The translations under genes were made by a program, and so were the position numbers. A model generated the notes under the pieces. That model saw nothing but the letters and a program-made list of their open reading frames with translations. It searched no databases and was not told the origin of the DNA. From positions 228,942 to 292,941 of the forward strand of contig CAJFCJ010000009.1 in assembly GCA_904063045.1 (NCBI GenBank): a DNA stretch of 64,000 nucleotides, given 5' to 3'. The stretch is from Dimorphilus gyrociliatus. Lineage: Eukaryota; Animalia; Annelida. Each line of letters opens with the position of its first letter. Positions within the stretch are counted from its first letter, which is position 1. This document shows, piece after piece, positions 40,274 to 45,433 of the stretch.

Positions 40274-40996
40274 ATGCTTCCAACGGAGACATCTACTGCG
40301 ATTTCAACTGCTCGCGATGTTATCAGTAATATTAAATTTCATCAAATTTTACTTTTAGGATTAGATGATAACGACAAAATGAACATTTTAAAGAAAATTA
40401 AGCAAGATGATAATCTTCTTCCGGTAACTTCTATTGGCTTCATTGTTGAAACAATTCAAATTACAGATAATTTAAGTTTTAATATATTCTGTATTGGAGA
40501 AAAGTTTCACATCAATGTACTCTGGCCACACTATTTGCAAAGTTGTAAAGGTTTGCTCAGTAATAATTATCAATTTCTTTTTCCTATTTGAAATTACTCA
40601 AAGGATTGCTGTTTGTAATTGATTGCCACCGGACTAATTTATTACAAACTGCCTTAGGAAAATTCTCTGAACTGATGGAAATTGAATTTTCAAGGAATAT
40701 TCCTATAGTTATTATGGCAAATAATCCTGATTTACCAGGTTAATAATCAATTTTTTATGCTTTTCTAAATAATAGGCATGACTATACTGTATATTTTTTT
40801 TTTAGACGCAATATCCTGTGATAATCTTTTGCAAAGACTCGATTTATCTCATTTCTCAAGTAAATTTCATATACAACCAGTATGCATATCTTCAGGAGAG
40901 GGATTAATCGAAAGTTTTAAAAAATTGGGCGAAATGATCAACAACGAAAAAGTAAAACTAATGAATGATGGAAAAAGTAAAAGTTTTTTTTTATAA
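40274..40996 (+). CDS. Divergent ARF-like protein with degenerate GTP-binding motifs (pseudo-GTPase candidate)
   Basis: Three exons with the same intron positions as the neighbouring ARF-like genes. ILLLGLDDNDKM (G1), IGFIVETI, FCIGEK (G3), MANNPD (G4), HIQPVCISSGEGL. Confidence 0.8.
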
Positions 40997-41613
40997 AAAA
41001 AAAACCTATATAAAGTTATTCTTTATGTTCTATACATTTATAGTGAAAATGCTAATTGTTTTAGTTTTTTATAAACAAGTTTTTTCTGAGTCATGTTATT
41101 GAAGAAAGCCACCTAGATTCAATTTGTAAATAATCATTTCAATATTTCATGTCATAGCAAATTAATCATCAAAACAGAAAAAATATGAAAAATTATAGTT
41201 TTTTAAACTTCTAACATATTTCTTTTGCAAATAAATTTAGTTTTATATGATAATATAATAATTCGATAACTAATGAGTTCCGTCTTTTCGAAGAAATAAT
41301 ATAAAACTACGAAATTGAACGTTAAAGTGTAAATATTTTAACAAATTTATTCGCAACAGTTCGAAAACTTTTTTATTTATCTTAAAAATAATTATTACAT
41401 TGATTAGAGTAGTAAAATAGTGAATATGAAAAAAAAAAAGAAAAATATACCATGGATCCAGTCTAATTTGTTGTGCAATTGGAATTGCCTGTTCTAATTC
41501 CTCCAGCGTGGCGGAGTTTTGATTGGCGTTGTGCAACCTTTCTCTGAAAGAATATAAAAGGAGATTTGGTTCATTTTTCAAATGTTAGCAGTGAATCTGG
41601 ATAGTTGGATAAA

Positions 41614-42304
41614 ATGGGTATACTTTTGTCAAAGATCGCTGATACTTTATATACTGCTTACAGCTTTGTAAATGAATCAAAACCATGTCGAATTTTACTT
41701 TTGGGATTGGATAATGCTGGAAAAACTTCAATTCTTTATAAAGTTAAATTAAAAGAGAATGTTTGCACTATTCCAACCATTGGATTCAATGTAGAAACTG
41801 TTCAACCTGCCAAAGGTCTAAACTTTACGGTTTGGGATGTTGGCGGTCAAAAGAGACTTCGGGCCTTGTGGCATCATTACTATAACGATGCAAGCGGTTT
41901 GTACAAACTATTCTCTTCTTTTAAACTTTGTAAATAAATTGCCATTTAAACAGGCTTAGTCTTCGTCGTTGATTCAAACGATGTTGAAAGAATGGATGAA
42001 GCCAGAGAAGAACTCCATTCCATAATGCAAGATGATAATATGAGACATGTCCCTGTCGTTGTTATGGCCAACAAACAAGATTTGCCTAGTGAGTGGTCAT
42101 TTATGAACATATTTGAATTGTATTTATTTAAATAACATTCATTTTTCAGATGCATTAAGTCCTGAAACTATACTTGACAAACTTCAATTGAGTAGAATCT
42201 CTAAACAGTGGTACATTCAAGCCTGTTGCGCAAACACAGGAGAAGGAATTTGCGAGAGTTTCCTGCAGATGGCAGATCTCATAAAGAGGAATAAACGCTA
42301 TTGA
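41614..42304 (+). CDS. ARF-like small GTPase (ARL11/ARL14-like), copy B
   Basis: MGxxxSK myristoylation start, [35 protein letters not shown]; exons 41614-41896, 41954-42089, 42151-42304 (approx.). Confidence 0.93.
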
Positions 42305-43108
42305 ACAGAAAATACGCGATTTTAAAAGCACACAGATTAACAATAAATACATTGATTTAAGGAATGATATTTCTTGATTGAATGAAATATCATATACGTT
42401 TATTTTGTGTTTTTGTACAAATTGTATCTTTATTTTATGTTCATTCATGTTCCCAGAATTGAATAATTAGTAAACATTATATAAATATATGAACTATTGG
42501 TCAATTTACCAATTTTGCATGTCTATTCTTATTTTTAGTATAATAAAAGGCTTATACTCTTATTATATGTTCTTTAATATCATTTTCCAGTCGGGTAAAA
42601 CAAATATAAGCAAAATTATTGCCAGCGTGTATAATTCAAGCGTGGCAAGGTGCAACCTTTACTAAAACATTCAACTCAACATTCCTTCATAAAGATATTA
42701 AAATTAATAAATGAATCTAATCATTTTCAAATAATATTATAAATGTTGAGAAAGTTGAATTACAGCGAAAAAGTTGAAGTAAAATCAGTTAGTTTTGAAT
42801 ACTCGTATTATATTTGGGTTTAGGCAATCTCTGGCTAAAGAGAAACAATTGACTCTACCATTCGAAAACTAAGGATCAACGAATGTTTTATTTAAAAAAA
42901 GCTTAATGGCCGCAGTTTATGATTAATTTACATATTTTGCTTCCTGAAACTGCCTAAAGCTGTTTGATGACGTGGAGGGTTTTTTATCATACAGTATGTT
43001 ATTAGAATAAACAACATAAATATTTGTGCAACCTTTCTCTGAAAGAATATAAAAGGAGATTTGGTTCATTTTTCAAATGTTTGTAGAGAATCTGGATAGT
43101 TGGATAAA

Positions 43109-43799
43109 ATGGGTATACTTTTGTCAAAGATCGCTGATACTTTATATACTGCTTACAGCTTTGTAAATGAATCAAAACCATGTCGAATTTTACTTTTGGG
43201 ATTGGATAATGCTGGAAAAACTTCAATTCTTTATAAAGTTAAATTAAAAGAGAATGTTTGCACTATTCCAACCGTGGGATTCAATGTAGAAACTGTTCAA
43301 CCTACCAGAGGTTTAAACTTTACGGTTTGGGATGTTGGCGGTGGATGTAAAATGCGAGCATTGTTTTATCATTACTATCACGATGCAAGCGGTTTGTACA
43401 AACTATTCTCTTCTTTTAAACTTTGTAAATAAATTGCCATTTAAACAGGCTTAGTCTTCGTCGTTGACTCAAGCGATGTTGAAAGAATGGATGAAGCCAG
43501 AGAATTTTTGCATTCCATAGTGCAAGATGATAATATGAGGCATGTCCCTGTCGTTGTTATGGCCAACAAACAAGATTTGCCTAGTGAGTGGTCATTTATG
43601 AACATATTTGAATTGTATTTATTTAAATAACATTCATTTTTCAGATGCATTAAGTCCTGAAACTATACGTGACAAACTTCAATTGAGTGAAATTTCTAAA
43701 CAGTGGTACATTCAAGCCTGTAGCGTAAAGACAGGAGAAGGAATTAGCGAGAGTTTCCTGCAGATGGCAGATCTCATAAAGAGGAATGAATGCAACTGA
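43109..43799 (+). CDS. ARF-like small GTPase, copy C (switch-II Gln to Gly)
   Basis: Paralog of copy B; G3 reads WDVGGGC; intact splice sites and frame. Confidence 0.92.
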
Positions 43800-45433
43800 A
43801 CAGTAAATAGACGATTTTAATAGTTTACAAATTTACTATAAATACATTGATTTAAGGAATGATATTTCTTGATTGAATGAAATATCATATACGTTTATTT
43901 TGTGTTTTTGTACAAATTGTATCTTTATTTTATGTTCATTCATGTTCACAGAATTGAAAAAAAAATTTCTTACCCAATGACTCAGAGAGTTTACGGGTTT
44001 TTTTCTCTATCAGAATATACTGAAAAGGTTGTCGACGGTACTCCTTTCAACGTGGCAAATTATATAATACTGATTAATTGTCCCAGTAAAAATACCCTGC
44101 ATAGGTATGTTATTTCGGAAAAGAGAAAGAATACTAAGGTTTATGTATAATAGTCCTAATTTTAGAAAATATTGCTAAAGCGTTTTCTTTAAATTGTGGT
44201 CCTATGAATGATTGTGAACCTAGTGAAAAATGAACCCTATCAATGGCAATTAAGAGAATATCTTAGCAATTCTTTAGATAACTTTATATAGATTTCATTT
44301 TCGTTGCTGATTCGATCGACGTTGAAAGAAACATAAATTTCTGCAGAAGATGATAGAGAGATTAAAATTTTAGATTAATTAAAGATTTTTTTTTGTATTT
44401 TTGTTTAGATTATTAAAAATTGTCTTGAAAATAATTTAGACTGTCTATCTTGAAAAAAAAACAACCTTTATTGTTTAAAAATAAATGTACTACGAATCCA
44501 GTCTAATCCGTTAAGGAAATTGAATTGGCGCGAAAATAATAGTTTATGCAATATCTTCCAACGTGGTTCAATATTATATGTCGGTGTAGAAACGTGCAAG
44601 TCTAATGTTGTCCTTTTAACAAAAAAGTATAAGCTAATTGAAGAGTTCACTGTTTTATGAATCAGAAATTGAGTTCGACAGCTATATCATTATCATCTGA
44701 TTTTATCATCAATTTAATAGTGATAACTTGAAAAACACGTACATTTTGAAGCAAAATGCAATGATAGACTGTATTTCGCATTTTAATAATCTTTTCTCTG
44801 TTAAAGGAAAAGTTGTGCACTCTTCAAATTACATATTGAAGATGGTGCAAAGACGTTTAACATACACGTTTATTATTAATATTAACAAATTGTCAAATCA
44901 ATTTACACTACATATTATCATCCATCTATTAATCATCCGCAATTGAAATAAATAGAAGAAATGAACAGAATGGTATGTATTACATAGATTTAACATCAAA
45001 TTGTAAATTCTACATCGTATTTAGTCATTTATATTAAACTTGAAAACAAGTATACTAACTTTAATTTAAGTTTAAAGCATTAAAAAAAAATGACTGTAAA
45101 TTTATATCACAGTACTGTCCTACTTCTACAAAATTGAATGATTAGAAGGAATGTTAGATTCTTTTGTTGACTAGACTTTTTTTAACTGCTCTGCGGAGAG
45201 GAGGCAACTAATTTGAATAATATCTAGCCTAGAAATGATGATAATCATCAAATTTCTAATGAGAGAAGGCGGAAAAAGGAAAATGATACATTAACAAAAT
45301 GACCAGATTTATATCTTGCTTAAATCTAGAATTTAATCTTAAACTAATATATTATGTAGAAGATTTGACTTTTTTTTGAGACAAAATAGATTGGATTAAG
45401 TTATTTCACTCGGAATGAAAATAAGAAGATAAT

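Follow-up and report, generated by a model that had tools for sequence, protein, structure and literature searches.

Tandem ARF-like genes with letter-identical introns and islands of coding divergence in the annelid Dimorphilus gyrociliatus, a candidate case of gene conversion opposed by selection

The window analyzed here is a stretch of 64,000 nucleotides (nt) from the annelid Dimorphilus gyrociliatus (assembly GCA_904063045.1, contig CAJFCJ010000009.1, positions 228,942 to 292,941 of the forward strand), and all coordinates below are counted from its first letter. The plus strand of this window carries a tandem trio of genes for ARF-like small GTPases, here called copies A, B and C (Table 1). 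Copies B and C, which are the subject of this study, each have one TATA region, one ATG, one stop codon and one poly(A)-type hexamer, and both of their introns have GT..AG ends. Copy A has its two introns at the same positions as B and C and yet shares only about 35% identity with B, and the local family is therefore old. With its degenerate motifs, LDDNDK in the P-loop and CIGE at the DxxG motif, copy A looks like a pseudo-GTPase, and it has taken no part in the homogenization of B and C that is described below.

Table 1. Features of the three ARF-like genes and differences between copies B and C.
Feature	Position	Strand	B vs C differences	Remarks
Copy A	~40274-40951	+		third ARF-like gene, intact, three exons
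Copy B block	41529-42463	+		935 nt: promoter-proximal 85 nt, three exons, two introns, ~160 nt past the stop
5' flank and leader			3/85	
TATA box of copy B	41553-41561	+		inside the promoter-proximal 85 nt
5' leader island	41587-41592	+	3 in 6 nt	no coding difference adjoining
B exon 1	41614-41896	+	19/283	94 codons + 1 nt: MG start, P-loop GLDNAGKT, switch I, interswitch, DVGGQ switch II
Largest coding island, switch II	41848-41884 (C: 43343-43379)	+	14 in 37 nt	2 synonymous (CGG/CGA, GCC/GCA)
B intron 1	41897-41953	+		57 nt, phase 1
B exon 2	41954-42088	+	9/135	135 nt, GLVFVVD to NKQDLP
B intron 2	42089-42149	+		61 nt, phase 1
B exon 3, coding part	42150-42304	+	12/155	TGA stop; G5 motif C-A-N
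C-terminal and proximal 3' untranslated region (3'UTR) island	42293-42342	+	14 in 50 nt	
Proximal 3'UTR			10/41	
Distal 3' region			1/118	
Copy C block	43024-43958	+		935 nt; gapless against B at offset 1495
C exon 1	43109-43391	+		Q79G (DVGGG for DVGGQ), I56V, A66T, K67R, K80C, R81K, L82M, W86F, H87Y, N91H
C intron 1	43392-43448	+		same letters as B intron 1
C exon 2	43449-43583	+		N103S, E114F, M119V
C intron 2	43584-43644	+		same letters as B intron 2
C exon 3	43645-43799	+		L148R, R155E, C166S, A167V, N168K (G5 motif), C174S, K188E, R189C, Y190N

In a gapless alignment the two blocks differ at 54 of 935 nt (94% identity). None of the 118 intron sites differs (0/57 in intron 1 and 0/61 in intron 2), compared with 40 of the 573 coding sites. 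Letter-identical are also the 58 nt from the start of the block through the TATA box, the opening 165 nt of the coding sequence, a stretch of 110 nt in the distal 3' region (42343-42452), and the last 43 nt of exon 2 together with the first 24 nt of exon 3. A first-pass annotation, made from the sequence alone, had reported identical introns of about 57 and 61 nt, an identical TATA region and identity over about 160 coding nt and about 105 nt of the distal 3' part, all of which we could confirm. It had also counted about 22 clustered amino-acid differences; the two proteins differ at exactly 22 residues, at the sites it had named, with the changed stretches being PAKG/PTRG, a run in switch II, EEL/EFL, CCAN/CSVK and the C-terminus. 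Many of the codons concerned differ at two or three bases, such as CAA/GGA, AAG/TGT, GAA/TTT and TGG/TTT, and the two codons split by introns are the same in both copies.

The differences are clumped beyond chance. The longest identical run measures 186 nt (permutation P=0.0003), and pairs of adjacent differences number 12 against 3.2 expected (P=5e-5). When differences no more than 12 nt apart are merged, 13 islands are obtained (17 or 10 with other limits); the divergence between B and C is 0% between the islands, against 28-38% in islands and some 30-50% in the larger ones. This bimodality of divergence is the robust anomaly of the locus. The islands cover the catalytic glutamine, the helix of switch II, E114 and the G5 motif. 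Furthermore, the 11 synonymous differences lie at a median distance of 4 nt from the nearest replacement, the permutation mean being 33 nt (P=0.0005). With Nei-Gojobori counts made exon by exon, the nonsynonymous divergence (dN) between B and C is 0.071 and the synonymous divergence (dS) 0.083, a ratio of 0.86.

The edges of the identity block are abrupt, with non-homologous flanks on either side: a comparison of the spacer between A and B, the spacer between B and C and the region after C gave no real homology, only AT-rich noise. The B-C spacer is 560 nt long, unique and free of Ns. Searches of the whole 77.9-Mb assembly of D. gyrociliatus, run exon by exon, showed B and C to be the only two copies; neither a third copy nor a donor of the switch II patch of C was found there.

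A separate observation concerns the outer limits of the differences. The final difference of the 3' island (42342 in B, 43837 in C) is the first base of the hexamer, which reads AATAAA in B and TATAAA in C. All differences between the copies fall between position 41587 in the 5' leader and this hexamer, save for one base at 42453. This span may correspond to the extent of the mature mRNA.

Both proteins are recognizable members of the ARF family (PF00025), with which they share an Arf domain match in every exon, an MG start, a P-loop, an interswitch and the NKQD motif. Against a Pfam cut-off of 22.3 bits, and with each exon searched separately, exon 1 scores 102 bits in B (E=3e-29) and 88 bits in C; for exon 2 the scores are 55 bits in B and 51 bits in C. 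Exon 3 on its own is borderline because the piece is short, with 20.2 bits in B and 22.5 bits in C. The motifs GxxxxGK[ST] of the P-loop, DxxG and NKxD (here NKQD) are present in both proteins, the first and the last being identical between them. Both open with MGILLSK, a beginning that would be compatible with myristoylation of Gly2 and an amphipathic membrane helix. The closest solved chains are those of Arf1 and Arf6 (3lrp, 1r8q, 2a5d); the public protein of the locus, a B/C chimera that is discussed below, matches Arf1 with an E-value of about 1e-55. B and C are not, however, orthologs of Arf1, for which separate loci exist in this genome.

We compared the residue states of B and C with those of 145 aligned relatives and considered a state to be rare when its frequency was below 2%. 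B has no private rare state and carries a family-typical residue at every site that differs between the copies. By contrast, C has eight rare states (T66, G79, C80, M82, F86, Y87, H91 and F114). Switch II's catalytic glutamine, position 79, is present in B and in 145/145 relatives, and is replaced by glycine in C. Position 86, a tryptophan in 144/145 relatives, is phenylalanine in C, as is position 114, a glutamate in 135/138 relatives. The G5 motif C-A-x is kept in B and reads S-V-K in C, at positions where the relatives have cysteine in 118/132 (89%) and alanine in 128/132 (97%) of cases. C thus departs from the ARF family at two motifs, having neither the glutamine of switch II nor the alanine of G5. 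Its reading frame, splice sites, P-loop, DVGG and NKQD are all intact. Positions 56 and 86 we take to be I49 and W78 of Arf1, a numbering based on our own alignment. Positions 87 and 114 are suspected to form a coupled pair that links the switch II helix to helix 3, since most relatives combine arginine or lysine with glutamate at these two sites, and two G-type proteins combine tyrosine with phenylalanine or tryptophan.

The second of these G-type proteins comes from outside the genome. P0002, P0003 and P0005 are three proteins from public sequencing-run assemblies, none of them encoded in the D. gyrociliatus genome, that share with B and C a longer, distinctive N-terminal helix. Their best matches in the genome are B and C; P0003 has its better score with B, and P0005 has a marginally better one with C. 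P0002 and P0003 read DVGGQ, and P0005 reads DVGGG. Among 150 retrieved proteins, P0005 is the only other one without a glutamine at position 79, apart from P0130, which reads leucine there through an intron. P0005 shares G79, Y87 and H91 with C and has a tryptophan at position 114, where C has phenylalanine, both being aromatic. The overlap of rare sites between C and P0005 exceeds chance (P=0.037), and the residue is identical at three of the four overlapping sites. The rare states common to the two proteins point to an old G-type lineage. A word search with exon 3 of C alone gave no matches, and a metagenome scan with P0005 gave generic ARFs only, at no more than 61% identity.

In their structure, P0002, P0003 and P0005 run uninterrupted across the position of intron 1 and turn to non-ARF sequence directly after QDLP, which is the position of intron 2 in B and C. 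The source of these sequences may lack intron 1, or they may represent partly spliced transcripts.

The hypothesis towards which we lean is that B and C represent an old pair of paralogs, one Q-type and one G-type, that gene conversion has homogenized except in islands, where old sequence has been kept for the most part by selection. In outline, B and C would be old tandem paralogs of a dinophilid-specific ARF-like small GTPase, both with the N-myristoylation-type N-terminal helix (MG...S6), the P-loop, NKQD and nearly the same switch I. B would have kept a conventional Q-type switch, whereas C would be of the G-type, without the catalytic glutamine, with a remodeled switch II and helix 3 and with an altered G5. 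Repeated conversion between the two would have made the promoter, the introns, most of the exon sequence and the distal 3' region identical to the letter, and the roughly 13 short islands would be what survives of the old, strongly diverged sequence. Most of the coding islands would persist because a conversion tract running over them abolishes the function of the G-type (or the Q-type) and is eliminated by selection, and synonymous differences would survive only within a few bases of a protected residue. From what is known of the family, B would hydrolyze GTP with the help of a GTPase-activating protein (GAP). C should still bind nucleotide, since its P-loop, DVGG and NKQD are intact, but would hydrolyze it poorly, and its effector pocket would be changed (I56V, W86F).

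We base the case for conversion on the sharp edges of the block, the bimodal divergence, the hitch-hiking synonymous differences and the rare states common to C and P0005. The close packing of the synonymous changes and the codon swaps of two or three bases, which stand beside a single change in about 290 non-coding sites, exclude young point mutation and give the islands an old appearance. Abrupt edges, only two copies in the genome and an old local family are together what conversion between old neighbors would be expected to produce. The anatomy of the locus, the clumping, the rarity of the states in C and the lack of a third copy are observations; how old the duplication is, what part selection has played and how B and C behave biochemically we infer from these patterns and from family knowledge. 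The proposal in the first-pass annotation, that conversion homogenizes the copies except at selected sites, can accordingly be divided: conversion with retained patches is the best supported part, and selection as the force that holds the patches belongs to what we infer.

Several results weigh against this hypothesis. It had also been claimed that neutral divergence should give the opposite pattern. When the differences are taken as independent, the contrast of introns with coding sequence is indeed significant (Fisher P=0.0008; P=0.003 against synonymous sites), but with each island treated as one unit and its place drawn at random, the introns stay untouched with a probability of 0.08-0.15, and the excess of islands in coding sequence is not significant (P 0.12-0.36). 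The contrast of exons with introns is thus not robust on its own, because the differences clump into islands and are not independent. Two of the islands are non-coding, one in the 5' leader and one in the proximal 3'UTR. Conservation at the sites that differ between B and C is neither above nor below that of the remaining protein, so relaxed constraint on C would also fit. Moreover, as many as 13 tiny islands require either very short effective conversion tracts or a very high rate of conversion.

The comparison with the relatives adds to these difficulties. The age that we would give to the duplication depends on a single protein, P0005, known at the protein level, and the glycine, tyrosine and histidine that it has in common with C could be convergent. 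In four-taxon patterns, counted like the tree on exon-wise column blocks, 11 sites group B and C against P0003 and P0005, and one site groups the proteins by type. A maximum-likelihood tree built on the columns of exons 1 and 2 leaves P0005 on a long branch without a resolved position and does not tell an old duplication with conversion from a recent one; a clade of C and P0005 is not rejected (approximately unbiased test, p-AU 0.31), and a clade of B, P0002 and P0003 is rejected only at 0.019. The grouping by species and the lack of resolution are expected if concerted evolution has acted in both lineages, and are equally expected of two independent duplications followed by convergence.

An alternative, which we regard as unlikely although it fares best among the competitors, is that no selection is needed: the islands would be parts of old paralogs that have not yet been converted, or that are so dense in mismatches that they are shielded from strand exchange, and C would be drifting towards a pseudo-GTPase under relaxed constraint. 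A dN/dS ratio of 0.86, differing sites of average conservation, islands in non-coding sequence and island-level tests short of significance are all as such drift would have it, and copy A illustrates that the loss of GTPase motifs has been tolerated in the local family. Drift sits less well with the intact frame, splice sites, P-loop, DVGG and NKQD of C. Nor would islands of a single base block strand exchange, and by our own coverage estimate thirteen gaps that leave about 13% of the block uncovered would call for some 100 random tracts of about 20 nt, long tracts leaving a gap or two at most. The recurrence of four odd states of C in P0005, three of them identical and the one at position 114 aromatic, likewise suggests that they have been kept.

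Less probable still, in our opinion, is the hypothesis that B gave rise to C recently, or that C has lately been overwritten as a whole, and that the 22 differences have since arisen by positive selection, in part through multi-nucleotide mutations, with the likeness to P0005 being convergent. The tree places all change on C (terminal branches of 0 for B and 0.11 for C), most sites group by species, and 11 of the 13 islands touch coding sequence, all of which a young duplicate would explain. It would, however, have to have acquired about 40 coding substitutions, 11 of them synonymous and located beside replacements and several of them in codons changed at two or three bases, against one change in about 290 non-coding sites. 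Most of the events would have to be multi-nucleotide, a type that makes up only a small part of the mutations in the animals studied so far. Patches copied from a template would need a donor, and the genome holds none. A dN/dS ratio below 1 argues in the same direction. Strong diversifying selection, which the first-pass annotation had offered as the other possible cause, is for this reason not upheld: beside the ratio there are the multi-base swaps with their synonymous neighbors and the 0/118 differences at intron sites. We also considered an arms race with pathogens, since the pattern had been read as a signature of immunity genes, and rejected it on the ratio and on the nature of the changes; no finding ties B and C to immunity.

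Two further explanations concern the data and the gene model, and we find both very improbable. The copies, or their identical and divergent tracts, could have been made by the PBcR, Quiver, Pilon and HaploMerger2 processing of the assembly, in which 101-nt reads served for polishing and a merging step gave a haploid reference (PMC7854359), and identical tracts longer than a read do invite mis-mapping; but these are tandem copies separated by a unique spacer without Ns and not separate haplotigs, polishing can wipe out sparse differences but cannot create codon-coherent patches with both frames and the splice sites intact, and exon sequences of both the B-type and the C-type occur in the public protein, though this derives from the same assembly.

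That protein, DgyrCDS7192 (CAD5118495.1, 190 amino acids), is the sole public protein of the locus and the best database match of exon 1, at 100% identity. Compared residue by residue, it consists of exons 1-2 of B (41614-42088) joined to exon 3 of C (43645-43799). Exon 3 of B and exons 1-2 of C were not found in any protein of the searched collection, and neither of the two true proteins is present there. The public proteome of this model annelid thus contains one chimeric protein and misses both true ones. Since the junction of exons 2 and 3 is identical in the two copies, a chimeric model is an expected artefact. Taken at face value, the model would mean that B and C form one transcription unit, with read-through splicing from exon 2 of B to exon 3 of C, with the pair serving in part as alternative cassettes and with identical introns kept for splicing, and the annotation did weight transcript alignments from PASA tenfold over its other evidence. 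We nevertheless give this idea very little credence, as a TATA region, an ATG, a stop codon and a poly(A)-type hexamer are present in each copy separately, and short reads or Trinity contigs are ambiguous across the shared junction.

Duplicates under ongoing gene conversion, with peaks of divergence maintained by selection, were reportedly described by Teshima and Innan in 2008. In the primate opsins and in other genes, a low divergence of the introns is combined with peaks at selected exon sites (PMC3924837). The primate red/green (long-wavelength/middle-wavelength, LW/MW) opsins and RHD/RHCE resemble B and C in being tandem paralogs with homogenized introns and differences at a few exon sites, putatively the decisive ones in B and C, and in such genes the coding sites may follow orthology and the neutral sites the species. 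The differences are that the B/C unit is smaller than 1 kb and is broken up by numerous islands (13-17) of very small size (1-50 nt), that the comparison of species with type is weak for B and C and limited to the protein level, and that the trait at stake is the loss of a catalytic residue rather than spectral tuning. The process proposed, gene conversion, is a textbook one, and no new kind of biology is opened by it. Its value lies in the scale, in that the locus offers a compact case, less than 1 kb in all, for the study of selection versus gene conversion at the level of the single codon.

A natural absence of the catalytic glutamine is known from other small GTPases, among them ARL13B, the Rnd proteins and RhoH. 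IFT27 and IFT22 also belong to this group (PMC10505919). Like C, these proteins have kept the P-loop and the nucleotide-binding motifs and have replaced the hydrolytic glutamine, from which slow or GAP-independent cycling is expected. Their kinship with C is only at the level of the superfamily, and C differs from them in that it adjoins a near-identical twin with the glutamine, with which it is probably being homogenized. A natural ARF-type GTPase without the catalytic glutamine beside a near-identical normal twin constitutes a ready-made biochemical pair.

A more far-reaching idea, which we put forward as a speculation and hold to be rather doubtful as it stands, is that the dinophilids possess a two-component ARF module, consisting of a hydrolysis-competent switch and a near-identical GTP-locked twin with the same membrane anchor and another effector face, in which about ten islands are kept apart by selection against very frequent conversion. 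If this were true, the module would rank with the most finely resolved cases of selection acting against homogenization, and C would be a natural Q-to-G ARF with a conserved function of its own, for example as a constitutive scaffold or as a decoy for the GAP or the effectors of its twin.

Some minor observations on the surroundings of the pair concern the history of the array. A direct repeat of 51 nt, 75% identical, occurs upstream of B (41437-41487) and about 520 nt downstream of C (44477-44527). The spacing of its two units, 3040 nt, is roughly twice the 1495-nt period of B and C, and the repeat may be the trace of an older array. Past copy C there is also a weak relic that resembles exon 2 (44297-44329, IFVADSIDVER; tblastn E about 0.15-0.2). 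Some 240 nt further upstream, at 44048-44056, lies the motif CAACGTGGC, which resembles CAGCGTGGC upstream of B; the common form CARCGTGGC has two matches, upstream of B and after C, against 0.13 expected. The relic and the motif upstream of it may represent a decayed fourth copy.

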